Source of the DNA: Pelomyxa schiedti
Taxonomy: Eukaryota; Protista; Evosea
NCBI GenBank assembly: GCA_020536535.1
Contig: JAHLWZ010000808.1
Location: 62,001 to 126,000 of the forward strand
Direction: 5' to 3'
Length of the DNA: 64,000 nucleotides
The notes beneath the pieces are model-generated. The model saw only the letters and a list, made by a program, of their open reading frames with translations, had not been told where the DNA came from and ran no database searches. The first letter of the stretch is position 1, and each line of letters opens with the position of its first letter. Positions 15,430-64,000 of the stretch are shown in pieces. The translations under genes and the position numbers were made by a program.

Positions 15430-17869
15430 CTAATTCTTTTTGAGGGATGGTATTTGGAATCCACCACCAAGAAGTGCTAAGAGAGCCTCCTATGTAGAAT
15501 GAATTAGTGACCTGTTCCTTTCAATACATCTATCCCATTTGAACGAGTAGAATTGGGGAGGTACCTGTTTCTCGGGATTTCTTGTCCTTGATGTACCACT
15601 AGCAGTACCACCACGGGATTGTGTTGCTTTAGTTGATTTCGCTGCCCGTGTTGGTGCCCGCTTCGTGGTTGTCTTTGTGGGTTTGGGTGCTTTTGTGTGA
15701 GGCGGCTCCTGTGTGGCTGTATTCTTCGCTGCCGCCGGTGCCTTTCTTCCGCGTTTTTTTGGAGGTTCTTCTGGTTGTGCATCCGTGGTTTTCTTGGGAT
15801 CGGTATCCTTGTTTCCTTTTTTGGTGTGCTTGACCTTGGAAGCCTCTTCATCTTTTGAAGGCTCGGCGCTCGGTGGTTTACCTGTTATGGGGTGCGTCTG
15901 CTGTGTGCCGCTTTCCGGTGCTGGCAAAGGTTTTTTTGAAGCAGTGCGCTTTGATGTTTTCACAGATTCCTCTTCCGTAGTTTCCTTGGGTACTGCTTCT
16001 TGGGGCTTTTTGGGTTCTTCCTCCTTTGCTGGGGGAACTACTGTTCCCAATCCTTTATGAGAATCACTTGAGTCTGTTTGCTCTTTGCCAGCCTTTGGGT
16101 CTGTTTCAGTCACATTCTCCTCTTTCCCTCCCGCTGTGGAACCGTTGGGTGCAGTAATGGACTTTTCTGGCACAGATTCACTACTCTTGTGGGCTTGTTC
16201 TACTGTTGGTTTGATTCCATCTGACATAACCTCTTGCTTCGCAGGCTCTTCTTTACTTGTATGTTGGACTCGTGAAGGGTCATTTGTTGCGTCAGATTTT
16301 CCATCTGTTTTCCCCTCTGAGCTTGCTTCTGTCACTTTCTTTGGGATATCTTCCCGTTGCTTGCTTGCTTCAGTCCTTGCTTCATCATCTTCCTTCTTGG
16401 CAACAGGGGGTTTACCTCTGAGTCTCTGTTTTGGTTCTGGTTTAGGAAGTTTCTCTTCTTTTTTTGTTCTTGCCGGCTTGAGATCCTTTTTGTGTGTTCT
16501 TGTAGTTTTTCCTCCCACCTTTATTTCATCTTGCTGGAGGTCTTCTTTATTGGCTGTTGGTTCTCTGTTGCCTCTGTTTTTCGCTTTTTCTTCCGGCACA
16601 CTGCTTGCTTTCTTGGCTTGAGATGACTTCGGGTGTTCACTCTCCTCAACTGGGGGTGGGATAACTGCAATTGGTTCTACGGGAGTATTGTGTTTACGAA
16701 GTCTATGCTTTTTGGCAGGAGGGGCAGCCACATCAGTGACTTCACAAATTGATGCGGCAGTTGGAGTCACAGAGGCAGTTTTGGTTGTATCAATTAGGGT
16801 ACTAGAGTTTTCCACATTTTGACGAGGTTTCAAGGCATGAGACTCCACAGGAGCGTTATAGGGTTTGTCATTTTTCCTCTTCCTGGACAGATTTTCGTTG
16901 TCACGTGTGTTTTCACACTGTGTTGCTTCAGGCATATGTGGACAGGAGCCAGGTTCAACACTCTGAAGAGCTGCTCCACTTTTCACTGAGTCAGTTGTCT
17001 TGGAGGATTGGTCCGTAGCACTCATGGGGAGACCAACTGTGGAACAAGAAAGCAGACCATTGAAGCCTGAGGTGCACTGGAGAGTAATGAATTGAAGGGG
17101 GAAAAAAAGGATCGATTACAAGTGTCCTTAGAGCTTCAAACTGGGTTTTTTTCTCCTCTATCAAAACTTGATTTCTTTTCTGAGCCTTATATATTAGAGG
17201 AAACTTAGTAGAGCGAACACACATTTCGGTCATTCAACTCCATTTCCTTGTGGCACATCATGCAGCAGCACTTGATTGGTGTGGGTAAATTTTTCCCTGG
17301 GGAACTACGCTTTGAACTAAAGGCACTCAACTGAAGCTGTAAGTGAGACTTCTCCAACAGATGAGAAGCTCTCTCCAACCCTATATCAACTGCGTCACTC
17401 TCCAACAACTCCATATAAACAACAACACCAGCAACAACAATAACAACAACAAAAACAACAACACCGCCGAACCGACTGCCACCGAGTACTACATACAATT
17501 GCTGAAGCCCAGCTTATGTATCTCCACGCCCAGCAGCGAAGCGGTGCAGCGGTCCTCGGCCCGCACCATCCTCAGCTCCGCAAATGGCTTGGCGTGGGAC
17601 CACGGCACCCGCGCCAGCGTCTGCGCGGGCCGGTAGTCCAGCGGCGCCCAGGGCTCCCAGCTCCGCCTGCCTCCCTCCCCCTGCGCCCCGAGCCCTGCGC
17701 CCTCCCCGTCCTCCTCCTCCGCCCTGGCCCCGCCCCCCGTCCCTGCCGCCTCGTACTCGTCTTCCCCCTGCTGCCCCTCTCGCTGGTGGGCCACCGCCTG
17801 TTGGGCACTCGAGTGGCTCGTGTCCTTTTCTTGCTTGACGGCAACCAGCCGTTGCTGTGTCTGCTGCAT
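15430..17869 (-). CDS. Hypothetical protein: small N-terminal Cys-containing region plus a long Lys/Glu/Pro-rich disordered region
   Basis: Splicing joins ORF 17489-17869 to exons containing PIKCCCMMCHKE and then the 511-aa ORF 15490-17025. Probable last exon EALLALLGGGFQIPSLKKN*. No family recognised. Confidence 0.6.
17418..17463. repeat. Imperfect (CAA)n microsatellite in an intron
   Basis: aacaacaacaccagcaacaacaataacaacaacaaaaacaacaac, lying inside the predicted first intron of the 15430-17869 gene. Confidence 0.8.
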
Positions 17870-25350: not shown

Positions 25351-28300
25351 TCAGGGGTCCCCTGCCTGGGCCTGCACCTCTTTTTGCTTGCGCTCCCATT
25401 CCTCATACCACTTGTGGGTCTCGGCTCTTTTGATGGCTTCCTCCTCCCGTTTGCGGGCCTCTTCCTCCTCCCTCTTTTTCCGCAGTTCCTCACGCCGGCG
25501 GGCTGCTGCTGCTTGGCTCTGGGTGAGTTTGTCCTCACTGGCACTGGCGCTGCTTGGTGCTGCAGGGCCCTGGGTGTTTGTTAGTGGGCCGGAATAGATG
25601 AGCAATGGGAGGAGAATCAACCTTCATGAAAACGCCGCGAGCACTCTGGACGGCGCCGGATTCTATGGATAGAGACTTGGTTGTGGCTCCTTTCTGGGGG
25701 CCTTCTTGCAGCGATAAGAATTTCTCGCGCTGCTGGTGAACGATGTTTATATGTTGCAATTGCTCGGTTTCACGCTGTCGAGCAGTGTTTGGAGTAATAT
25801 TCGTTGGTTTGTGCGTGATAAGAGTTGTAATTGCAGCGCTGACTGCACCTGTTTCTACTACTTTCGGGGCTGGTGGTGGTGGAGGTGCAGGTGGAGGTGG
25901 AGTGAGGTTTGCTTTTATAGTGGATGGCGGTTTTGATTGGCCTTGTTCCGTAGTTATCACCTCCACCTCTACCTCTTTAATTGTTTCAATGGTTACCTCA
26001 CTTGTAGGTAAAGGTTGCACAATAAGTTGCATTTCAACTTGCTCAACAGTGCTAAGTGCCCTCTTTTCATTTTTCTCAGGGAGTTTCGCCTCCGCAGTCT
26101 GTCTCCTTGCAGCTTCCTCTGCAATGCGTTTCCTCTTTGCTTCATCGGCAGCAAGTTTCCTCCTCGCCTCTTCTTCTGCAATGCGCTTCCTCTCAACTTC
26201 TTCTTCTGCAAGGCGCTTTCGTTTTGCTTCAGCTGCCAGGCGTTTCATCTCTGCTTCTTCCTCTGCGATGCGTTTCTTTGCTGTTTCTTCTGCAAGGTGC
26301 TTCTTTTCTGCTTCCTCATCTGCAATGCGCTTCTTCTCCGCTGTTTCTTCTGCAATACGTTTCTTCTCTGCTGCCTCTTCTGCAACGCGTTTCTTCTCTG
26401 CTTCTTCTGCAAGACGGTTCTTCTCGGCTTCCTCTTCTGCAAGGTGCTTCCTTTTTACTTCTTCCTCGACACGTTTCCTCTCAGCTTCCTCTTCTGCAAT
26501 GCGTTTCTTCTCGGCTTCTTCCTCTACAACACGTTTCCTCTCTGCTTCTTCCTCTGCGACGCGTTTCTTCTCTGCCTCTGCATCTGCGACGCGTTTCCTC
26601 TCTGCTTCTTCCTCTGCGACGCGTTTCTTCTCGGCTTCTTCCACGGCAAGTCTTTCTTCTTCCTGTTGTTTTAGGAGAGCCTCCTCTTTTTTCTTCCTCC
26701 GTTCCTCCTTTTTCCTTTCATGTTCTACTTGTTTGGCTTCCTCCTCTTTCAGTCTTCCAGCTTCCTGGTCTTCCTGAGATTCTTTTTTTTTACCTTCGTC
26801 CTTCGTTTTGAGCTTCGTACCTTCAGCAAGAGCCTCAGATGGTTGATGTTCTGGAGAGCTGTGTTCCTCCGAATGTACATTTGCCGTATCCACTTTGACA
26901 GGAGCATCACTGGAAACCGGTTGGTTTACTGGTCCCACTGACACTGGGGGAGTATTTGGCTTGGGTTGGTTCTGAGCGGTCTGTTGATTTGCTTGTGCCA
27001 CTTCAGTTTCTGTAGTCTTAATTGAAGCCTTTTCCATAACAGCTGGGCTGGGTGACACTTCAGTTGAAGACTTGCTCAGTGTGTTTGTAGGTCGTAGTTT
27101 CACAGTGAAGGGGAGTCCCCCTGTCCCTGTGGATGGTGGGGTTTGTGGTTGCTTTATTGTTGCAGCATTCACCCCAAATTTCTTTGGCTCTGCTGTTGCT
27201 TTCGTGCCAACAGTTTCTGAGGCAGGAGGGACATTGGACCTGGGTGATGGATTGGGTGATGGATTGGAGTTGGCTGCTTCAGAGGGAGCAGTGTCGCGCA
27301 TCTTTGCAAGTTTCTTAGCCAATTCCCCTCCATCACTTGGCTCAGTTGGAACAAAGGACTTTTTCATGGTCTGAGCTGAACTAGCTCTATTCAGAGGGCG
27401 AGCAGCTGTGTTAGTTGAAGGTTGGGGAGTGGTCACCGGTGGGTCAGGTGTTGGTGTAATTGTGACTACCACAGTGGGAACTTGTACTGCAGGTGATGGA
27501 GATGGTGATGGTGAGGGAGAGAGCTCCCTGTCTGACCCACCTGGGGAGTGAATTTTTTTCCTTAGTGTTGAACCCCAAGCAGGCTGATCCTGAGTCTTAA
27601 GTGAAGCAAGCTTAGCTTGCCTGTCTGACTCTATTCGATTAGCTCTTTCTTCAGCTTCCTTCTTTGCAATCTCTTCTTTATGCTTTATCTCAGCAAGACG
27701 CTCCTCCTCAATACGCCGTTCCTCAGCAAGTCTCTGTTCTTCTTCTTCTTGTATACGTTTCTTCTCGGTTTCTTCTGCAAGTAACTTTTGTCTGTCCTCC
27801 TCTTCCTTTTGTTTGCGTTTTGCTTCAGCAGCAGCATTAGTTTTTCTTTGCCTTTGTTCCATAAGCCGTTTCATCATAAGCTCTTTGCTGGTGGCTTTAG
27901 AATGAAGTTAAAGCAAGAAAAAGATGCATGTATAAATACCTCCAGGAGTAGTAGCACCCTCACCCATTTTGACCTAAAGAAAAACAAAAACAGTGACAAT
28001 ACACAAGAAATAAAGTTAGTGAGGCTTGGAAGCTATTTGTAGTGAAAGCATAAGCTTTTTTTTTTTCCCCCACACTCACCAGTTTTAAAGAAAAAAAAAA
28101 AACCCAAACAAACCTCCATCTGTAGGCCACTGGAAGTCAAGGCCGTGCCAGTGTTCACTGTTGGGATATCCGGCGATGAAGCCGACAGCGAGGCTCCTAC
28201 CCCGGGGGGCGAGGAGCCCAGCACGGGGGAGCCGCCGGTCACCGGCAGCGGCGACAGCGAGGCCCCGCGCCTGGCGTCCTTGTCGCGGTCCCTGTCCCTC

Positions 28301-37758: not shown

Positions 37759-39864
37759 ATGTCGTCGTCCCGAAGGAACAGCCTAGCGTCGGGCAACGGT
37801 AGCAGCACCAGCCACCACCAGTACAACCCCACGCCCCCAGGCTCGCCCCCGAACCCCTTGTCCCCGTCCCAGGCCCCTCCCTCCGCCTCCGCCGCCGCCT
37901 CCTCCTCCTCGTCCATCTCCAACCCCTCTGCCTCGTCCTCCTCGGCCTCCTCGCTGCTATTCACGACCTCCCAGCTGCGCTCGTCCGTGTCCACGTGCGC
38001 CCTGCAGCAGCAGCAGCAGCAGCAGGGGGCGCCCTCGTCTTCGGCTGCAGCGGCGTCCTCGTCCTCCTCGGCGTCCGCGTCGCCGTCGCACGCGCCGCAC
38101 GGGAGGACGCACGCGCACACGCCGTCGCACCACTCCACGACGTCGTCCTTCTCGCGGCACTCGGAGCCGTCTCGCCCGCCGCTCTCGTCGTCCCCGCTCA
38201 TCATCGGGAGCTACCGCGAGGCCAGCCCCAGGCTCGCCACCTCGGCCTCGGAGAGGGACAGAGAGAGGGAAAAGGACAGGGGGGACAGGGAGCTCAGAGA
38301 TAGGGACCGGGACCGGGATAGGGATCGGGGAGGAATGCGGGATATGGATAGGGATAGGGACCGGGACAGAGACAGAGACAGGGATAGGGACAGGGACAAT
38401 AGATTGCGAGATAGGGACAGAGATAATAGGTCGCCACCAACTCCTCCGGCTAGGTGCCGATCACGTTCTTCGGCGGCAATTAACTTGCCTGACGGAGACT
38501 TAACTGAAGGCTATGGCGACCTTGTGTTACACCGCACTGCGCGATCACCTAATGGACTTGACCCTGCAAGCCCTCCTTTGCTTCCACCATTGTTGTCACA
38601 GCCAAGCTCGCCTGCTACATCATCGAAAGGGACACATGGAGCTGTGGCTCCTCTGAAAGTCCGGCTTACCTTAAATCAGACTGGTCATTCTCATTCCCAT
38701 GCACATGTTCATACAAGCACGCATGCTCATGGACACAATCACACTCACTTGAGGGATGACTACAAGCATGACTCCTTTAGTGTTAGCTCTGAAAGTTCCG
38801 AGAAGAAAGAGGCAAAATCTGGTCACAATTCCTCAGATGCAGACAAAGACAACACGTTTCGTGACGACCGCCGTGATAGATATAAGCACCACCATAGAAA
38901 ACCAAAATCTTCAACCTCTCTCTCCCCATCTTTGGAAGAGTCTTCCACACCACCCCTACCATTACCAGAAGCGGAAGTGGAATCCCCTGAGGCTCCCGAG
39001 CCACAGCCGATTCAGGCCACACGGAAATTGCCAACCCAAATTGAATTAATTCAGCAACACTTGAAGGAAGGACACCAGCCTGGCACCCAGGAAAATCTAG
39101 AATCTGAGCTGAACTCACGAGCACAAAGAAGTGATTCTGATATGTCAACTCTTGACATTCACGCGGCTCTGGCAGTTAAAGAAAAGGAGCTTGCCTCTCT
39201 GATTGGTAGGTACAACTACATCAAATTGCTTTTTTGATCTCTGTCAGAATTGGTTACAATTAAGAAGACTACTTGCAGCCAACTCCTATTAAGGAAACTG
39301 ACATTAGTCTCTGACATAGCTGAACTTAATAAAGTCAATTCTACCCTACGAGGTGACTTGTCCATTTGACTAAGATATCCACTAATGAAATTTTTGACAG
39401 AGAAAATTGCTACTTTTACTGAAGAAGGTATTGCTGTAGAGTACGAAAATGAATCCACCGCCCAGCATAACTCGTTCCTGCAAGTTATATCACACCTACA
39501 GGGTGTGGTTGGGAACTTGGAATCATGTGTCTCTAATATAACAGCTAATACCAAAAAGGTTCGTTTACGAGGTTCTCCTTCACACCCCTTATTCTATTCT
39601 GCAGAACTTCACAAATATAAATCTTGTACAAATGGGCAAAATGGTGGAACAGAGGGAAGTGCACATTGAGGACTTGAACAAGTCACTCAAAAAGTCACTA
39701 GGAATAGTTGAGGAGGTCAAAGCCTCAATACAACAAGAGAGGACAGGTGGCTCCCTCTTCAATACACTTTTTTTTTTTTAATCAACAACATAGAGAGTGA
39801 TAAGGTAGAAGCCAATGTAACACAGAAGTTAAAACTACTTGATGGCCTGGGTATGAAGCACTGA
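37759..39864 (+). CDS. Hypothetical protein: Ser/Gln/His-rich and RD-repeat N-terminus, coiled-coil C-terminus
   Basis: 492-aa first exon, then short GT-AG-flanked exons giving a heptad-rich sequence (..VEQREVHIEDLNKSLKKSLGIVEEVKASIQQE..). No family recognised. Confidence 0.6.
38256..38430 (+). repeat. Arg-Asp dipeptide repeat (AGGGAC/CGGGAT/AGAGAC hexamers)
   Basis: ERDREREKDRGDRELRDRDRDRDRDR...RDRDRDRDRDRDRDRDNRLRDRDRDNR. Confidence 0.9.
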
Positions 39865-51086: not shown

Positions 51087-54000
51087 TCAGCAAGATACTG
51101 TGAGCCTGACAAGGAGGAGGCTTCGGCTTACCTTTTGGGCTGGTTTGACAAGAACTTCGGACACCATATAGGAGCAATCAAGCTTCCCTGGTACGGGTGG
51201 GCAGTAGAGTGGAACAGACATCTTCATGGCAGCTAAGGTGAGGAGTACATCACCCGGAATTACTTTCTGGCCAACGGTGACAGAGATGGATTCAATGTGG
51301 CCGGATATGGGCGCCCTGATTTCACCCGGAGCGCATACAACGGGCGCGGAACTCTCTGACTTTTCTTTGGTGCTTGTGCTGGAGTTATCATTTGCGGCGC
51401 CGACGCAGTGAACTGGTGCCGAGTCATCCAGGAAGTGCAGGGTTCTAGTTTTCTGTAAACTAACGGGCTCGATGCGCTGTAGTTGTATTGTAGTAACACT
51501 GAGGGAATCGGCGCCGGGGGGAGGCATCGAGTCGGCGGCGGGTGGAGTCATTCCCTCCGTACAATGATTTTCGGCAAGAAGTGAGTAGTTGTGAAGAGTT
51601 GTTGAGCCGCCGATGGACATGCCAGTAAAGAAAACACGGGAAGTGAGGCCTCGTGTCAGGGTGCCATATTCTTTTGTGAATTCGGCGTTCTTACCCAGAT
51701 AGGCACGAGGGAACAATGCACAAGCCAACAGGCTTTCGATTGGTACAGGATCTGAAGTGCCATACGCAGACTGTATTTTGGCGGTCAGTTCTTCGAAATT
51801 TGCATCAACTGGAACTTGGTTGCGTTTCGTTGCAGGATCAGTCTGAGTTGCTGCAAGAACATTTGCGGGGAACCCATGGTGTGGAACACCCAATGCACCA
51901 TTTAGCATATCTTTAACTGATTGAGGGAGCTCCCACCGGGCTGTATCTGAAAGCAGTGCTTGCTCTGGAGTCATATTACGACTGACCATATGGACAGCAA
52001 GATCTCCAACAACTCTGCTAGAGGGAGTTACCTTGATTACACGACCAAGTGCTTCGTCAGCCAGGGCGTACGCTTCAAGAACACGCGGCATGAGGTGAGC
52101 AATGCCCAGTTGTTTGCACTGATCGCACAGATTGGTATACTGGCCTCCTGGCATTGCAAAGCGGAAAGCTGAGGTTGAGGGAATATTATGGGCGTTGTAA
52201 ATGGAGTACCACGGTGCCCGCACAACTCCCTTCCACGCGTCATCAATTGGTTCTAACCACTCTGATTCAATTTTAAGTTGCCTTGGAGCTCGTCGCATAT
52301 ATTTGAGTGCAACACAGAGGGCCGCGAGGGATGGTTGTGAAGGTGACGCCGACATACACTGAGGGGCGCATACATCAACTACTTCGCACCCGGCCTGCAC
52401 CATGGCAATTATTGTTTGCAATGCAAGACCTGAGCTATCATGTGTATGGAAATGTATAGGAAGTTGGTTATTGGTCGCTTCACGCAAGGCATTCAAAAGA
52501 GGGAGAGCATGAGATGGCTTAACCATTCCAGCCATATCTTTTATGGCAAGAATATGAGCTCCAGCTGCAACAATTTGTTTAGCTACGGACTTGTAATAAT
52601 CAAGTGTGTAAATCGTTTCTTTCTCACTTTCAAAATCTCCGGTAAAGCAGATGGCCATTTCGACAATCTTACCACAAGCAGAAGCTGCCTTGGCAACCTC
52701 TGTCATACGACTTACGTCATTGAAACAGTCGAATATGCGGAACACATCAATTCCACTTTGTGCAGCAGTTTTGACAAACTGATGTACAACATTTCTGGAC
52801 TGACGAGCAGAGGCAACGATATTTTCTCCACGAATTAGCATCTGTAGTGCTACAGTCTTGGGAAGTGTCGCTCTAATAAGACGTAGTCGCTCCCAGGGGT
52901 CTTCACTTAGGAATTCTAGGCAAGATTCGAATGTTGCACCACCCCACATTTCAGCAGAGAAGAAAGAGGAGCTCTTTGAGAGTGGAGAGGAAGCCATTAC
53001 TTGACATATTGCCAGCAGGTCTCGAGTTCTCACACGGGTTGCAAGCAAACTCTGCTGCCCGTCTCTCATTGCAGTATCGGTAACAAAGACTTGTCTCTTT
53101 CCCTTCTCTAGTAGCCATTGTGAAACTGCTTTTGGACCATAAGCGTCCAAGATAGTTTTCATTGATGATGTATCGTCCGATTTCGTGAAATCGGGGCACA
53201 CTACAGACTCAGATGCCCGTGGTGTGCTTGCTCCGAAATTAAACTGTGGTACAATCAATTCAAGTGCCTCTACTTGAGTTGCTGAATCCCCCATAGCAGC
53301 CCATTGGTCCTTTCGTTGACCAAGAGTCGTATTTGTTATGTACTTGATATATGGTTGAGCTGGGTAAATTTTCGGCACGGGCCTGCTGAAAATAGGGGGA
53401 ATAGACTTGCTCAAATTTGCTAGGAGTTCTTGTTTTTCCTTGGGCTTGAGTTCACGGATAGCTTGCGGGAACATGCGCCTGTATTTAGCAGATCTTCGAT
53501 CAAGTAATTCTTTGCCGTTCAAGTCAGCAAGTGATAGAAGCGACTTCAGAATAAATCTACGTATTTCATTGGCTGTCCCCCAAATATCGCCAGGGATCTC
53601 AGTGATTATATGGTCAACAAGACCTAAACTATGAAGCTTTGCTGCGTTCCAACCAAGTGAGGTGGTTATTTCATTCGCTTGAGCAGTAGTACAAGATTGC
53701 CGCCGCAAGAGTGCAACGGACTCGGGCGTCATTACACCAAGGTACCCTGAAGAGAGAATAGCTGAGTAGTCGGAGTAGCACAGACATGCTGCTCCACCAG
53801 AGCTCGCTTCAGAAATAATCACAGTGATGATGGGTACGGAGCATTTCGAAAGAGATAGAAGTAAAGCAGCCATTGATTGATACACACCCTTAGCTTCCTC
53901 AAAGAAATTTGGAACAGCACCAGGTGAGTCAACCAAAATTACAATGGGGAACTGCCACTTTGCTGCCATTCGAGCAAGGCGTCGCGCAAAGCGTAGGTCT

Positions 54001-55732
54001 CCGTGACTTAGCATTCCGCAGTTATTTTTCTCCATGTCTCCCAGAGAATGGCCTTTTACAGTGCCCATAATAAACACTGGGACTCCGGCAAGAGAGCCAA
54101 CACCTCCTCTCATACAAACATTGATGCTATCTTTGGAATCACCATGCATCTCATTGAAGTTATCGAGAATTGCGTTAAGGCAGTCCTGTGCTTGCAAACG
54201 GCTACTATCTCGTAGCTTTGAAATGTCGAACTCAAATTGGGGTGTTTTCTGTGCGCTGGCCTCAAAAAGCTTTGGTGTGTTATCCAAGGCGTTGGTGAGA
54301 GTTGATTTAATGACAGCACGGGACGGGTTTCTCCACAATCTCCAGCCAACGGAAATTACATGCAGTAAGTTTAATAGGTAGTCACTGATCTCTTTATCAA
54401 CAATTACATCAGCACGCCCATGATTGTACACAAACTGCGAGGTCTGGAATCCTTGAGGGCAATTTGCATCATACTCAACCACGTCTCCTTTGAAGATGGT
54501 GTTCAGGATAACTCTCACACCAGAAAATCCAACCCTTGCAGACTCTAGGGCAATGATAACATCGCAAGAACTTCCATAAGCGGCAGTAATGGCCCCAAAT
54601 GAGGGGTCTTTTAAAACGGCAATCACGGGTAAACCTAATGAATGAGTGATTACGTCGTATGGAAAAAAAAACCCTTTACCTTGAAGGTTGAGCTTGTAAA
54701 GTACAACAAAGTACTTGCAAATTTCTCTGAGAGAGTATGCACCCTCTACATGTTGAGTTAGAGGAGGTGAAAAGAAGTGGTTACTCAGACCTTGTATTCG
54801 CAGCCCACCTCCAGCACATGACAAAACAACAGGAATTTGCTCACGAATTGCTTCCTCTAATCCTCGAGTCATAGTTTCACCTTCTACAGCCCCGATAGAA
54901 CCACCCATGAAACCAAAGTCATGTCCAATCCACATCACACGACACCCAGATACTTCCCGTACATCCGCGGTTACAGCCGAGAAGGATGCATGATTCATGT
55001 CTCTGGCTGGGTTTGCGATCCACCTTAAAATGGCGGCCTTCTTGATTTTTTCCTTGTAGGTGTCACCCCCAAAGCAAAATCCAAGAGGATCTTGTGGCAC
55101 TAGCATAGTCTTCCGGGGGGATCGGGATCGAGGTTCCTCAGTCATAACAGGAGGAGTTCCTCGTGGAATAGAAATTGTAGCTGAAGATTCAGCTGCAATT
55201 GAAGTGGAATTGAACATACGAGCCAGATGTGCTGTGTCCGCTGGAGATTGGGAGACGGCATCCAAAAAGTGGTTGTAGGACTCGGAGAAAACGGGAGGAG
55301 TAGCACTTTTCAATGCTGATACAACTTGGCCTTGATCAACCCCTGCAGAAGGAAGATATATAGCCAATAGAGAGTAGTCATCCTTCAATTGGAATTTCCA
55401 GAGACGAGGTCCCAGAGTTCTATTTGTATGTGTGGTTACCTTTTTTTTTGCTACGAATTTCCTTTAATTAAGAAATTGCAAAAGTATGGAGTGTGTGTAG
55501 GCACCCCCAAATTTCCCTCACATGTTACAAATTCTTAATAAATATTCAAGGAAAACAGAGGGACACACTTTGTAGAGGCACATATTGATTTAAGAACCGT
55601 TTCACGAGCATCCCACCAAGCGTCATGCCCTCGCTCTTTTGCGATCGTGTGATCAAAAAACTCGAGCGATTCCACGGCATTGCCGAAATACTCACGGGCG
55701 TCGAACTTCGATGGAACATAGATCCAAAACAT
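51087..55732 (-). CDS. Fused biotin-dependent transcarboxylase (AccD-like CT beta + AccA-like CT alpha + pyruvate carboxyltransferase/OadA + biotinyl carrier)
   Basis: GGSIGAVEGE and spliced LRIQEG (CT beta). VDSPGA and SEASSGGA (CT alpha). DTAMRDGQQS, IKDMAG and HFHTHD (pyruvate CT TIM barrel). AAMKM biotinylation motif at 51219-51230. Upstream exon 55732 plus a 22-nt micro-exon restore the N-terminus. No ATP-grasp domain seen. Confidence 0.9.
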
Positions 55733-59590: not shown

Positions 59591-62500
59591 TTATGAGAGG
59601 AATACAGGCGCGCTTATACTAGAGGCTATGTACTCAAATTCAGACTTTAGAGCAACACCATCAGCCCCACAGCAGAAAGTCCCCTCAGCACATTCCGCGA
59701 GCCGGTTCAACCGGGCGGAATCCTTCGGAGTTGTGCCAAAGCCCAGTACATAAACCGGTACTCCTGGGAATTCTCTGTGGAGTTCTGTCATCTCGTGGTC
59801 ACCGTTCTCGCACTCCCCATCAGACATGAACAGCAAGACAGGCTCGTGGGTTCCAAATCCACCGGCTTTGAGAATTTCGTGGCATTGCACAATGCCTGCA
59901 GCGAAGTTGGTGCCACCACGTGGGTTCGCATTCCTTGGTAGGGAAGAGGTCAAATCGGGAGTGAGTTGGACCTGCCCCAGCCTAACACTTGCGCTGTTGG
60001 AGTATCCAACAACTGATATTATGTCAGAACAAGGAGTACGCAGCTGTGAACACTGGTTGATCCTATCTTTAGCAAATGCAGCTACTGCTTCGAGTAGCTG
60101 AAGCCATCGCTTGCCACACATTGAACCAGATTCATCCAAGCACATGACGACGAAGCGCGGTGGTGGGTTGGCAATGTTTGATCCAAGTCTTGCAAGCTGC
60201 ATTATCCTGTTTTGAAGGTCTCGTTTTGGAGCTTCACCACCGTCAAACGAGAATAGTGCTTTGACAAATTCGTCAGTATTGCTATGCAGTATTTCAGCTT
60301 CTTCGACTTCTTGCATAAGGACTGCAAGAGACTTGTTGTATTCTGACTGTTGCCTTGATCTAAGACTGGCATAATCTCCCCCATTTATCATTGCGGATAT
60401 TTCAGTATCAGTGAAGCTCCAGTCTTCCCTAAGACTTTCCGAACATAAAAAGAGTTTGTAGTTCCCTTGGTGACCTTGCCGCGCTGTCCTTCCACGTATT
60501 TGAATCTCCTCTGAGATAGACGCGGAGAGAAAAGTTTGTATGACCAATACACCCCCTTTAGTATCCACTTCTTTGTAAGATTTGAAATCGATCCCGCGGC
60601 CAAAACTTCTAGGTAGTAATGTAACAGCCCCAGGTTTTGATGCTTGAGAAATCAAATTGTCTTTGTACTCTGACTCCTCCACAAGAACATTATACCCAAG
60701 TGTTATGTTCTGTGCATTCGAGGATAAAAAGGTTCTGTAGGACTCTAATGCAACAACATTTTCAAAAAAAATTAGAACGGCACGGCCTTTTGTTTGCGCA
60801 TCAGCAGCAAGGCAAGATATTTCATAAAAGTGATTGTGCCTGTCGGGTAAGATTTTTATGTCATTGATGGGCCTGAAGTCAAGCCTGGAAGGGCCGTAAA
60901 TGGATGGCGCATAGGAAAGAGTATTCACTTTATATTTCTTTAGAAGCTCAAGTTCTTTATCGCACAGAGTATCTAGGGTGCCTGTAACACCAGAAATAAT
61001 AGCATACCGCGAAGGCAGCTTTGCATAAGAAAAGGAACCACAAATAATTGAAAAGCCCACTGCAGCCTTTACAGCCTCTTCAGGCAAGGTTTGATTTGAA
61101 AGCTCGCTCATGTATGCGAAAGTAGTTTTATGAGCAAAATAGGTAGAGTAATCATAGGCCATAGAAATTTTCTGTGTTTTGTATCCAATTTTTCCCTTTA
61201 TACGATCAACATGGTATGGGGGACCTGAGCGAAAGTTCTGTGCATCAGCAACCATTTGGCAAATTTGGCAATCAAAGAGAGGCTTAAAATCGGGCATTTT
61301 GGTAACCAGGGTTCGATAACACGTTTGTTGTTGTACTTTGCGTGCACTAAAATGTGGATCAGAATAATGATCCCACACAAACTTAATTAGTTCATAGCAT
61401 TCAGGTTGTGTCAGTAAGGCAGCTGGCATATAGGTGCCCCCTAAGAAATTGTCACTGAAGAACACATCAACTTCGTCAATCAATAGTACTCGCTTCCGCG
61501 TCGGTGTGGCAATTGGTCTACAAGCAGTAGAATTGTTCAAGAAACTTGTCACTCGATCCCTTACATTTCCTTGTGCATTGATGATTTTTTCACAAAGTGC
61601 ATTGACTGTAGAATATGAAATTCTTTCTCGTGTGCGAAAAATTTCAAACAGGAAATTGAAGGCTTGGCTGTCACGAGAACTTAAATACTCAGAATATGAA
61701 ACCACATCCACATCATAGCCAAGAATGGCAAAGAGAGTAGCGGTAACTCCCAACACGACTGATTTGCCTTCTCCTGTACCAATTTGAATGAAGTGACTTC
61801 TAGGAGTACACAATGACTTGTCATGGCTAAGAAGTTGGAGAATTGCCACTATCTGAACACTGTGGGGTTTTCTAAGAAACTCGATTTGTGTGAAAGTTTG
61901 ACTTCTATTGTTGAGAGTCCAAAGAGAAAATATGTATGCCATAACAATAGGCAAACGAGATGGATCTCTTGGAAGTGTTGTAGAAATTGCTAAAGCTTCT
62001 GATTTCAGATGTGTAAGATCCATGAATAAATTCTGCTTAACAAGGGAGTTGTATTTGGACTCAAACTTCTCGAAGACAGATTTTAGCTCAGGCCATTTAA
62101 TTCCCGTTTTCGCTGACCAACTCTCCGAGCCAAGTAAGCCGAGAAGAGGACCTTTCATTTGTTGTGTCTTAAACTGTGAAATTGTATGATCGATTCCTTG
62201 GTGTGCTATTTGCGCTGACATTATCTTGTTTCGAAGCCATTCAAACTCGGCATTTTCTGAAAGAATCTGCGTTCCAGTAATTCCAGAGGTCTCCAGTTCT
62301 CCAGCCAGTCTCGTTTCTACTTCTTGGTCGTTATTATTTTTCCTTATGAACTCACTAATTGTGACTTCAATTTGCGCTTTTAGTTCCTTTTCAATGGAGG
62401 GGATTTTTTCTGCAACGCCACGAATATTACACAGAAGCTGTGCCATACTTATTGGATCATTTTCTTGTTTCGTGAGTGCAATCTTAGATTGAATACTTGA

Positions 62501-64000
62501 GAAAACATGCTTCTTCACGGTGTTTGCCGGGTTAACACCTACAAATGAGCACAGGCAAGCGCTTCTATCGCATTTCAGGAGCACACCGGCCACAACTTCG
62601 AGCTTTTCCGTGTCCCAGGCCTTAATTGCCTGCTGCTCGATGTCGGAAAATTGTTTTCCAAGGATTTCTATGGGGTCAAATAGAACTTGGATTTGTGGTG
62701 AAATTGAGTGCAATTTCCTGGCATCCAGTTGCTTTCGGGAGAGCTCTTCCACGACATCATATCGCTCAGATTTAAGCGCCTCTCCAAATTCACGTTGAAT
62801 TGAACACAAAGCCTGATTGGCGAGATCTACTCCCTCTTCAAAGGAAAAGAACTTTGCTTGCATTTGAAGGTGTTCAACAATCTTTGACAAAATCTCCTGG
62901 AGAAGGCCCAAGGACTGCAAAAAGCGGAGATGATTTCCCACTGCTAAAAGGTCACGGTGTGTAAGGGCAGATTTGAAGCTGAGTTCAACTTTATGACTTG
63001 CCTCGGCAGATAGTTTCACCAAGGAAGTTCCTTTTTCTGCTTGCGCCTTTATAAACTCCGCAAATTCCCGTGGAATTTTGGGTGTGGTGACTTCAGGGGG
63101 TGGCTGAGGTACAGAACTCCGAGAAAATTGTTTCAAAGCATGATGGTACGCACAATACATGTTATTGAAGATATAACTGTATATTTCTGCTTGGGATGAT
63201 TTAACACTCTCTGGAGCCATTTCTTCAAGTGCCTTGCTTATGCAAAGACTTCGTTTTACTTGCTGTGCGTCAACTGACTGAAGAAATAAAACGAGGGGTT
63301 TGAGTTCAACTTCCTTCTGTAGGATAGTGAAAGCTTGAAAGACATCGGCCATTTGTGGACTGAATTCTTCATTTACTTGGATTGATTTTAGAACAGAATT
63401 TAACTTGGTTTCTAAGGTTGCCGCTATCACTTGGAGGGTCTCTTCAAAAAAATGTGTGTCACACTCTAGAAGGTGCAATTTCCTTTCGACACTGTGATAG
63501 TTCTGTTGCTGGCACTGTGAGAAAATTTCTTTTTGTAATTGTTGCTTTCTCTGAAGAATTTTTTCTCGAATGACTTTTGCCTTAGTCAACACAGAACCAG
63601 AGAGCTCTGAATGAAGGTCTGATACTAATAATTCCACTTCCTCAAAGGATGAAGGTGCCTCTTCCATAATCGCTTTGGACAGTGATGGGTCGTGTTCTCC
63701 AGTTGATTTGCTGTAATACCCTTTCAGAAGCTGATCGAAGTAATTTCTGATTTCTGCCGTAATAGAGAACGTGCAACTGTGAGACGTGTCAAAGTTGTGC
63801 TTCGAGTTCTCAAAAAGGGCATTGACTCTGCTGGAATCAATATAGGGCCGCTGCCTAAGAGCAGGACGCAACGTTTTCTCTATCAATTGTTGCAGTTTTG
63901 TGTCAAATGTGATATCAAGTTGATCAAGAAGACTCGTTGTATGTGGGTCTAGAAGACCACTCAACTTATTCTTAAACCCAAGTAAATGGTCTTGAGCGGA
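59591..64000 (-). CDS. SecA-like SF2 ATPase/helicase fused to a C-terminal vWA domain; 5'-partial, no introns seen
   Basis: Motif I IGTGEGKS (61760-61780), SEYLSSRD, DEVD (61466-61477), GVTGT, FGRGIDF and QIRGRTARQG. vWA MIDAS DESGS (60119-60136) with GGTNF and FMSDG. The frame stays open to position 64000. Confidence 0.85.
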   Translation of the reverse strand, partial: SAQDHLLGFKNKLSGLLDPHTTSLLDQLDITFDTKLQQLIEKTLRPALRQRPYIDSSRVNALFENSKHNFDTSHSCTFSITAEIRNYFDQLLKGYYSKSTGEHDPSLSKAIMEEAPSSFEEVELLVSDLHSELSGSVLTKAKVIREKILQRKQQLQKEIFSQCQQQNYHSVERKLHLLECDTHFFEETLQVIAATLETKLNSVLKSIQVNEEFSPQMADVFQAFTILQKEVELKPLVLFLQSVDAQQVKRSLCISKALEEMAPESVKSSQAEIYSYIFNNMYCAYHHALKQFSRSSVPQPPPEVTTPKIPREFAEFIKAQAEKGTSLVKLSAEASHKVELSFKSALTHRDLLAVGNHLRFLQSLGLLQEILSKIVEHLQMQAKFFSFEEGVDLANQALCSIQREFGEALKSERYDVVEELSRKQLDARKLHSISPQIQVLFDPIEILGKQFSDIEQQAIKAWDTEKLEVVAGVLLKCDRSACLCSFVGVNPANTVKKHVFSSIQSKIALTKQENDPISMAQLLCNIRGVAEKIPSIEKELKAQIEVTISEFIRKNNNDQEVETRLAGELETSGITGTQILSENAEFEWLRNKIMSAQIAHQGIDHTISQFKTQQMKGPLLGLLGSESWSAKTGIKWPELKSVFEKFESKYNSLVKQNLFMDLTHLKSEALAISTTLPRDPSRLPIVMAYIFSLWTLNNRSQTFTQIEFLRKPHSVQIVAILQLLSHDKSLCTPRSHFIQIGTGEGKSVVLGVTATLFAILGYDVDVVSYSEYLSSRDSQAFNFLFEIFRTRERISYSTVNALCEKIINAQGNVRDRVTSFLNNSTACRPIATPTRKRVLLIDEVDVFFSDNFLGGTYMPAALLTQPECYELIKFVWDHYSDPHFSARKVQQQTCYRTLVTKMPDFKPLFDCQICQMVADAQNFRSGPPYHVDRIKGKIGYKTQKISMAYDYSTYFAHKTTFAYMSELSNQTLPEEAVKAAVGFSIICGSFSYAKLPSRYAIISGVTGTLDTLCDKELELLKKYKVNTLSYAPSIYGPSRLDFRPINDIKILPDRHNHFYEISCLAADAQTKGRAVLIFFENVVALESYRTFLSSNAQNITLGYNVLVEESEYKDNLISQASKPGAVTLLPRSFGRGIDFKSYKEVDTKGGVLVIQTFLSASISEEIQIRGRTARQGHQGNYKLFLCSESLREDWSFTDTEISAMINGGDYASLRSRQQSEYNKSLAVLMQEVEEAEILHSNTDEFVKALFSFDGGEAPKRDLQNRIMQLARLGSNIANPPPRFVVMCLDESGSMCGKRWLQLLEAVAAFAKDRINQCSQLRTPCSDIISVVGYSNSASVRLGQVQLTPDLTSSLPRNANPRGGTNFAAGIVQCHEILKAGGFGTHEPVLLFMSDGECENGDHEMTELHREFPGVPVYVLGFGTTPKDSARLNRLAECAEGTFCCGADGVALKSEFEYIASSISAPVFLS

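Follow-up and report, generated by a model that had tools for sequence, protein, structure and literature searches.

The end of a 64,000-nucleotide stretch of the Pelomyxa schiedti genome (GCA_020536535.1, contig JAHLWZ010000808.1, positions 62,001 to 126,000; G000:C808:62001-126000, here called the window) encodes part of a giant protein in which a SecA-type motor is combined with a G domain and a von Willebrand factor A (vWA) domain. On the minus strand, positions 59594-64000 form a single open frame of 1,469 sense codons with no stop before the window ends. This frame is exon 4, the final and longest of the four exons in a nuclear gene of this organism, which continues for ~1,100 further codons on the remainder of the contig (locus L002; window-equivalent position = L002 + 58999). 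The predicted protein of ~2,580-2,600 residues (full-length relatives have 2,449-2,556) consists, in order, of a TRAFAC-class, GIMAP-like G domain, an alpha-helical region of ~1,400 residues, a SecA-type superfamily 2 (SF2) ATPase, and a vWA domain whose metal-ion-dependent adhesion site (MIDAS) is complete. The catalytic motifs of the motor and the MIDAS are intact and the G domain keeps G1-G3, so that the G domain adds a second nucleoside triphosphatase (NTPase) module to the SecA-like motor, making a two-NTPase machine. Protists, bdelloid rotifers and intracellular bacteria share the widespread family to which this gene, an old member, belongs; its membership and architecture are nearly certain. 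The product is very probably not a Sec translocase, and the best explanation overall, which is moderately probable, is that it acts as a GTPase-gated, ATP-driven remodeller.

The motor is SecA-type by Pfam, by sequence search of the PDB and by an AlphaFold model. A sequence-only reading of the window had described a frame of more than 1,460 codons with a SecA-type motor and had quoted the motifs GTGEGKS, YLSSRD, DEVD, GRGIDF and QIRGRTARQG, together with DESGS and a later Thr and Asp; every one of these is present. A domain scan of exon 4 matched SecA_DEAD above its cut-off, as well as VWA_2 and VWA (Table 1), and placed P-loop_SecA just under its cut-off (26.5 bits against 27). A phmmer search of the PDB returned SecA chains only (best E 3e-12) over the RecA stretch 60443..61042, and an hhalign comparison of the family profile with a true-SecA profile gave a probability of 99.9 (E 7e-33) for an alignment that stops directly behind motif VI. 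None of the ATPase motifs varies across 41 family rows (the invariant residues include G365, G368, T369, G495, F500, Q528 and R532), and the family keeps two SecA-specific signatures, Y-x-x-Y-L-x-x-R-D following Walker A and a motif III that reads TGT. A Pfam Tox-PLDMTX match (E 0.066) overlapping the Walker A region was taken as chance.

SecA is a textbook SF2 helicase-type motor turned polypeptide pusher and is regarded as a bacterial and plastid export enzyme. The Pelomyxa protein shares with SecA and SecA2 the two RecA-like domains, the motifs GxGEGK[ST], YLxxRD, DEVD, TGT, GRGxD and QxxGRxxRQG, N-terminal helices packed on domain 1, an insert that separates Walker B from motif III, and a long helix following domain 2, but it lacks the wing domain, the two-helix finger and the C-terminal zinc- or SecB-binding tail, and its insert is not recognisable by sequence as the preprotein cross-linking domain (PPXD) of SecA. 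It also differs in being eukaryotic and cytosolic, with ~1,750 residues (G domain and helices) before the motor and a vWA domain after it. SecA_PP_bind and SecA_SW were not found by Pfam in exon 4; most true SecA proteins recovered in the same family search carry SecA_PP_bind and SecA_SW (PF07516). Curated SecA and SecA2 models (including the NCBIfam equivalogs TIGR00963, NF009538 and TIGR03714) match only the two RecA-like parts, at 32-64 bits versus cut-offs of 725-1,493 (best score, 64.4 bits against 862; TIGR00963, 51.2 against 800).

The motor and vWA domain were modelled together with AlphaFold2 (AF2) from window positions 59594-62083 (830 residues) and a 41-row family alignment, giving a mean predicted local distance difference test score (pLDDT) of 87.6 and a predicted template modelling score of 0.75, with block-mean pLDDT of 92-93 over residues 1-60. 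The first ~35 Foldseek matches of the model are all SecA or SecA2 (E 1.5e-20 to 2e-11). Pairwise alignment with VIA-align gave Z 29-31 for SecA over 441-562 residues, model residues 1-645 superposing on B. subtilis SecA 20-746, and the SecA alignments reach model residues 634-647, equivalent to B. subtilis SecA residues 729-746. The PPXD-less E. coli motor construct (3bxz) aligns over 374 residues at 3.0 A, SecA-N68 with its PPXD (5k9t) over 462, and full SecA over up to 562; the greater number of residues aligned with the PPXD-containing chains indicates that part of the 135-residue insert superposes on the PPXD, and the 41-residue post-motor helix on the scaffold helix. The insert is modelled as beta-strands at entry and exit, helices and a beta-hairpin, and nearly all family rows fill every sampled column of it. 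The motor and the vWA domain lie just 89 residues apart, which leaves no room for a wing domain, a two-helix finger, or a SecA scaffold plus wing. The wing domain, finger and C-terminal tail are missing, so that the protein is without the elements by which SecA contacts SecY and drives its substrate forward; only one long scaffold-like helix and an insert at the PPXD position are present. The earlier statement that both wing and scaffold are absent was correct for the wing, but not for the scaffold, whose helix has a 41-residue counterpart after the motor.

These results bear on two alternative motors. The first is a true Sec-pathway translocase ATPase, either organellar or derived from the SecA or SecA2 of a symbiont, to which the SecA_DEAD match, the near-threshold P-loop_SecA score, SecA as best structural match and the database label 'protein translocase subunit SecA' on some relatives all point. 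It is nonetheless the least credible of the explanations considered, in view of the low NCBIfam scores, the absence of SecA_SW and SecA_PP_bind, the 89-residue linker, the fully supported long branch that separates the family from true SecA, and the ~1,750 extra N-terminal residues with no targeting signal; the sequence-only reading had likewise judged a translocase unlikely. The second, which is the chief rival, is a nucleic-acid motor, that is, a GTPase-regulated SF2 helicase or translocase of RNA or DNA (a ribonucleoprotein remodeller, or a nucleic-acid sensor or effector) in which the vWA domain would be a regulator. The TFIIH p44 vWA domain regulates the XPD helicase in this manner, and p44 is among the best structural matches of the Pelomyxa vWA domain. 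The two-RecA core is of SF2 type, RNA-bound DEAD-box helicases align with it at Z 20-21 over ~325 residues, DinG and UvrB form the next Foldseek group after SecA (E ~1e-7), and Pfam Helicase_C, DEAD and ResIII give scores on some of the relatives as well. SecA is, however, a far stronger match by structure (Z 31 versus 21, E 1e-20 versus 1e-7) and the only one by PDB sequence search, and the SecA-specific signatures, the insert exactly at the PPXD position and the SecA-like scaffold helix make a nucleic-acid motor rather unlikely. A SecA-derived remodeller is therefore preferred, and whether its substrate is polypeptide rather than nucleic acid is judged about evenly balanced.

The domain that occupies the place of the SecA C-terminus had been read as a vWA domain with an intact MIDAS, and the Pfam matches and the AF2 model bear this out: compared with solved vWA domains the model gives VIA Z 20-21 (Mfa5, the PilB pilin and TFIIH p44), and the structural matches also include proteasome chains and the archaeal ArnAB complex, whose description makes it orthologous to the Sec23/24 core motif. 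The C-terminal domain is present in 32 rows of the family alignment (A2); D650 and S654 occur in every one of them, position 652 is Ser or Thr in all 32, and D755 is kept in 30. Family members that Pfam does not label VWA have a VWA_4 or sub-threshold VWA match at the same place. The MIDAS of integrin I domains and of midasin binds an acidic residue of a partner. By analogy, the fused motor and vWA domain of Pelomyxa may resemble MoxR-vWA, midasin and TFIIH XPD-p44, where a partner or substrate docks on a MIDAS-type vWA domain to which an ATP motor is coupled, with the differences that the Pelomyxa motor is a SecA-type SF2 enzyme, not AAA+, and that motor and vWA domain are fused in one chain.

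The search for the 5' end recovered exons 1-3 on the remainder of the contig and revealed the G domain. The sequence-only reading had noted about 700 residues of helical sequence before the motor; within the window this stands, and 62084..64000 has no Pfam match at E <=0.1, but the frame starts outside the window. No family was detected in the ~1,400 residues between G domain and motor by Pfam or in ESM Atlas models (scores 0.75-0.77, below a useful level). Exons 1-3 encode a G1 motif (GPTSAGKS), the G2 Thr (SQT) and a G3 motif (DSAG) that align with the G domains of 13 relatives, and the P-loop Gly and Lys, the switch I Thr and DxxG are conserved across the 14 family G domains. No Pfam GTPase family reaches its cut-off on the G domain: the sequence gives only sub-threshold matches to MMR_HSR1, AIG1, FlhF, septin and GIMAP (AIG1 only on the metagenome homolog P0002, 19.2 bits against 27, E 8e-4), and its profile reaches E ~2e-3 to FlhF in the PDB, with septin-9 and GIMAP weaker. 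A model was made of the G domain of P0002, which belongs to the sister clade (pLDDT 87.6; the Pelomyxa G domain is split by introns). It has a TRAFAC GTPase fold, a class that came from structure and not from sequence, with GIMAP4 (VIA Z 14.4), EngB (13.7), GIMAP7 (13.5), HflX and Toc33 all within ~1.5 Z of one another. Like the GIMAP/AIG1 and Toc34-type TRAFAC GTPases, the family has this fold and G1-G3 with a DTPG-like switch II; it differs from GIMAP/AIG1 in a G4 that lacks the Asp (TKTSE) and in not reaching the AIG1 cut-off. The label 'GIMAP-like' is fair but weak because EngB, HflX and Era-type GTPases score within ~1 Z unit.

The same G domain would suit a dynamin- or mitofusin-like large GTPase of membrane or organelle remodelling or trafficking, with the SecA-like and vWA parts as accessories and no role in conflict. 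Foldseek matches of the P0002 G domain include Fzo1, mitofusin, MxA, IniA and bacterial dynamin-like proteins besides GIMAP7, a long helical stalk follows the G domain, and ArnAB is among the structural matches of the vWA domain. The dynamin-type matches are weak (E 1e-4 to 1e-5, TM score 0.27-0.39), however, and GIMAP4, EngB and GIMAP7 lie within 1 Z of each other; the protein has no membrane anchor, and recurrence in intracellular bacteria with lineage-specific expansions is unlike a housekeeping trafficking factor. Such a GTPase is accordingly held to be unlikely, and a GTPase-gated remodeller is retained. No signal peptide, transmembrane segment or targeting signal was found in the joined protein, in which 19-residue hydrophobic windows exceed 1.6 only in the Walker A helix of the RecA core; the protein is predicted to be soluble and cytosolic.

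The gene is not intronless, as had been claimed from exon 4, but is very intron-poor. A GT-AG intron just past base 64000 joins exon 4, which extends 20 to 29 bases beyond that base, to an upstream 983-codon open frame, and two more GT-AG introns precede this frame (107 and 49 nt), interrupting the P-loop (between GPTSAG and KS) and the stretch preceding switch I. Intron 3 has two in-frame acceptors 9 nt apart: the 40-nt form is that of the database gene model P0001 (2,436 residues, without the first two exons), and the 31-nt form, which uses the acceptor 9 nt upstream, would insert Asp-Phe-Val; comparison with the paralog on contig C1034 favours the 40-nt form. The four-exon coding sequence is in frame over 7,740-7,749 nt from the second ATG, or 7,806-7,815 nt from the upstream ATG. 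This joined sequence was used to check frame, length, motifs and hydrophobicity, whereas searches and folds used separate exons or homologs. Since the homologs end 1-6 residues from the Pelomyxa stop position, the C-terminus is complete. Alignment with homologs, including transcript-derived ones, revealed no hidden in-frame mini-introns in the two giant exons and no insertion except eight residues, so that the 4.4-kb and 2.95-kb exons are genuinely uninterrupted. The P. schiedti genome has 7.43 introns per gene (PMC8887013), and three introns in 7.7 kb are far below its average density. Upstream, the contig ends in a homopolymer run (L002 9460-9493, poly-Lys on the minus strand), and any upstream neighbour would lie off the contig.

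The length of the 4.4-kb exon against the genome's intron density, the relatives in intracellular bacteria and the prokaryotic symbionts that Pelomyxa carries (PMC10579272) might suggest that the single-cell assembly was contaminated with bacterial DNA here, or that the gene was acquired very recently by horizontal transfer or retroposition; the sequence-only reading had proposed recent acquisition or retroposition. Both are very improbable, and contamination, recent transfer and recent retroposition were rejected: there are three GT-AG introns, of which intron 3 splits a Gly codon and recurs with identical position and phase in the C1034 paralog (motor 44% identical); the nearest relatives are this paralog and a transcript of Mastigella; and the GC content of the gene (0.43) is close to that of the window (0.45).

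A word-based search with the motor-vWA part as query found 103 proteins, family members having E 1e-53 to 1e-166 and true SecA appearing only at ~1e-7. This agrees with the earlier suggestion that SecA-like motors of no established function are scattered among eukaryotes. The motor unit of ~610 residues, insert included, is common to the family (27-48% identity), and 16 of the 103 matches have both G domain and motor. The family spans amoebozoans (Arcella A0A6B2KWF2, Mastigella, Endostelium, Pyxidicula, Luapelamoeba), ciliates (Tetrahymena, Blepharisma), diplomonads (Hexamita), a euglenid (Eutreptiella) and rotifers (the bdelloids Adineta and Rotaria, and also Brachionus), with further members in Reticulomyxa, Symbiodinium and Salpingoeca infusionum. 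The members from Mastigella, Endostelium, Pyxidicula, Luapelamoeba, Arcella, Salpingoeca and Eutreptiella are known as transcripts. Wolbachia has members too, and several matches are insect records, the majority of which fall with Wolbachia in the tree. In species-representative genomes of bacteria, a scan found 24 loci, distributed over Legionellales, Coxiellaceae, Chlamydiae, Wolbachia, Bacteroidota, Margulisbacteria and unclassified Gammaproteobacteria, several of them uninterrupted frames of 2,900 residues with G domain, motor and vWA domain. One Legionellales copy, in a metagenome-assembled genome, adjoins a gene for a PARP catalytic domain with ankyrin repeats (L017 10835-13165, minus strand), an architecture that is eukaryote-like and of effector type. 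The Wolbachia branch lacks the vWA domain, and one of its members has a sub-threshold OTU match; other family members carry lipase, DnaJ or Sel1 domains according to precomputed lists.

Pelomyxa itself has at least four further SecA-like loci, which answers the question of paralog number raised by the sequence-only reading: the C1034 paralog, two on contig C262, and a divergent one on contig C730 (G000:C730:3-9980; L005/L009). The last is a frame of 3,326 codons with a coiled-coil-like N-terminus and a Pro/Thr/Ser-rich, low-complexity C-terminus, and it branches near the base, outside the main family. Motor trees group the gene with C1034 and the Mastigella eilhardi transcript (99% SH-like support with FastTree, 126 rows; 99% Shimodaira-Hasegawa approximate likelihood ratio support with IQ-TREE under the posterior mean site frequency model, 48 rows). 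IQ-TREE places C1034 as sister to Mastigella (93%), in which case the duplication would predate the divergence of the two archamoebae; FastTree leaves the trio unresolved. The surrounding clade holds Endostelium, Pyxidicula and metagenome proteins, all named members being Amoebozoa. The family does not branch with canonical SecA, from which branches with 100% support (lengths 1.26 and 2.03) separate it. Bacterial sequences are scattered at several places among the eukaryotic ones, which implies repeated transfer, and ancient transfer between bacteria and eukaryotes may have occurred in either direction. Fish proteins of ~2,590 residues labelled 'SecA' in the database (P0087-P0091, from eel, Synaphobranchus and fathead minnow), with a SecA-like motor in mid-protein, form a separate clade between true SecA and the Pelomyxa-type family.

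Full-text literature searches returned no description of the family or of its G domain/SecA-like/vWA architecture, only passing mentions. SecA-like helicase-related domains are listed among the effectors of Amoebophilus (PMC3482391), and L. fallonii lfa2470 is tabled as "[SecA DEAD-like]" in a section on horizontally transferred eukaryotic proteins (Gomez-Valero et al. 2014, PMC4256840). SecA-like ATPase domains in giant actinobacterial toxins are predicted to be secretion aids (Kaur et al. 2021, PMC8195603), and the 'secondary SecA_DEAD proteins' of Planctomycetes, which are described as sitting in a type I secretion gene neighbourhood (PMC4452313), are probably a different group. The nearest known counterparts are the unnamed giants annotated as 'SecA DEAD-like' or 'SecA family profile domain-containing', such as Arcella A0A6B2KWF2, the Mastigella eilhardi transcript, L. 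fallonii lfa2470 and the Amoebophilus effector domains, from which nothing essential distinguishes the Pelomyxa protein, itself a member; many of them share its whole layout from G domain through helical region and motor to vWA domain, with the MIDAS.

A mechanism can be proposed by analogy. GIMAPs and dynamin-like proteins dimerise or oligomerise on nucleotide binding, and in SecA the RecA domains, closing under the action of ATP, shift a clamp in which an extended chain is held. In the Pelomyxa protein the G domain may likewise be a nucleotide-dependent assembly switch, dimerising or oligomerising on nucleotide binding, while an acidic residue on a target or partner protein would dock at the MIDAS. 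The SecA-like motor, as it turns over ATP, would open and close a clamp made of the insert, RecA domain 2 and the scaffold helix. In the cytosol this clamp would grip an extended chain, more likely polypeptide than RNA, and remodel it. In sum, the protein would remodel or strip a protein that it has captured, gated by GTP and powered by ATP; the suggestion of the sequence-only reading that it captures and unfolds substrates, or acts in defence, was a reasonable inference. Conflict with, or control of, intracellular bacteria is the possible biological role that best fits the distribution. It is tentatively put forward because the family is widely but patchily distributed, its paralogs have expanded, some members have accessory enzyme domains (the sub-threshold OTU match and the listed lipase) and obligate intracellular bacteria carry it; the PARP-ankyrin neighbour and the published Amoebophilus and L. 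fallonii listings accord with such a setting.

Several points weigh against this proposal. The insert has no significant sequence similarity to the PPXD (no Pfam SecA_PP_bind match; hhalign of the insert alone, P 0.05), so that the clamp analogy is drawn from where the insert lies, how large it is and how far it superposes. G4 departs from the canonical motif (VTKTSE, with no Asp; T-K/H-x-x across the family), which makes guanine specificity uncertain, and the fold of the G domain is known from the model of the P0002 metagenome homolog and not from the spliced Pelomyxa gene. The sequence does not show the class of substrate. The conflict setting is circumstantial, drawn from the phyletic pattern alone: the bacterial copies come mostly from metagenome-assembled genomes, where binning errors are possible, and neither large exon matched any PADLOC defence model, which gives no link to a known defence system.

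Table 1. Features of the SecA-like gene in the window and on the adjoining part of the contig (L002)
Feature	Position	Strand	Evidence
Stop codon	59591..59593	-	Translation
vWA domain, Rossmann-like alpha/beta (model residues 643-825)	59609..60157	-	Pfam VWA_2 E 7.9e-9, VWA E 4.8e-6
MIDAS, DESGS (D-x-S-x-S), completed by a later Thr (GGTNF) and Asp (MSDGE)	60122..60136	-	Motif, alignment
Post-motor helical linker: two short helices, 41-residue helix (model 571-611), 20-residue helix (617-636)	60176..60442	-	DSSP on AF2 model
End of RecA-like domain 1 (motif III, GVTGT) and RecA-like domain 2 (GRGIDF, QIRGRTARQG)	60443..61042	-	phmmer against PDB, NCBIfam
Family-specific insert of ~135 residues, Walker B to motif III, at the PPXD position of SecA	61043..61447	-	Alignment, AF2 model
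RecA-like domain 1: Q-motif-like Gln, Walker A, YSEYLSSRD, Walker B	61448..61888	-	Pfam SecA_DEAD E 5e-10
Walker B, DEVD	61466-61477	-	Translation
Walker A, GTGEGKS	61760-61780	-	Translation
N-terminal helices packed on the motor (model residues 1-65)	61889..62083	-	AF2 model; superpose on SecA from ~residue 20
C-terminal third of the long helical region, still exon 4	62084..64000	-	Open frame
Intron 3	L002 5022-5061 (window-equivalent 64021-64060)	-	GT-AG
Exon 3	L002 5062-8011	-	Four-exon gene model
Intron 2	L002 8012-8060	-	GT-AG
Exon 2	L002 8061-8185	-	Four-exon gene model
Intron 1	L002 8186-8292	-	GT-AG
Exon 1	L002 8293-8527	-	Four-exon gene model

Elsewhere in the window, an uninterrupted frame of 1,433 codons (51087-55388, minus strand) has ACCA, Carboxyl_trans, HMGL-like, PYC_OADA and biotinyl domains, and its predicted product looks like a single-chain transcarboxylase. 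This neighbour is also intron-free; thus, long unspliced genes are not unique to the SecA-like locus. Frames of 780 codons (25535-27877, minus strand), 511 codons (15490-17025, minus strand) and 492 codons (37759-39237, plus strand) match no Pfam family at E <=0.01.

The gene reveals a separate, old and widespread branch of the SecA motor, carried inside proteins of ~2,500 residues that also contain a GTPase and an adhesion domain with a metal site; this branch has been kept in many free-living protists and rotifers and recurs in bacteria of the Legionella, Coxiella, Chlamydia and Wolbachia types. A more speculative possibility, regarded as doubtful, is that these proteins are a class of cytosolic machine common to eukaryotes and intracellular bacteria, in which a SecA-derived motor working without SecY unfolds or strips MIDAS-captured polypeptides under the control of a GIMAP-like GTPase, serving hosts as a device of innate immunity or symbiont control and bacteria as effectors; if true, the SecA fold would be seen for the first time to thread polypeptides in a task other than protein export. 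The 830-residue motor-vWA fragment, with its confident model, is tractable for biochemistry. The function of the family would show what a SecA-type motor is able to do without a membrane channel, and may uncover a new layer of conflict between hosts and symbionts.

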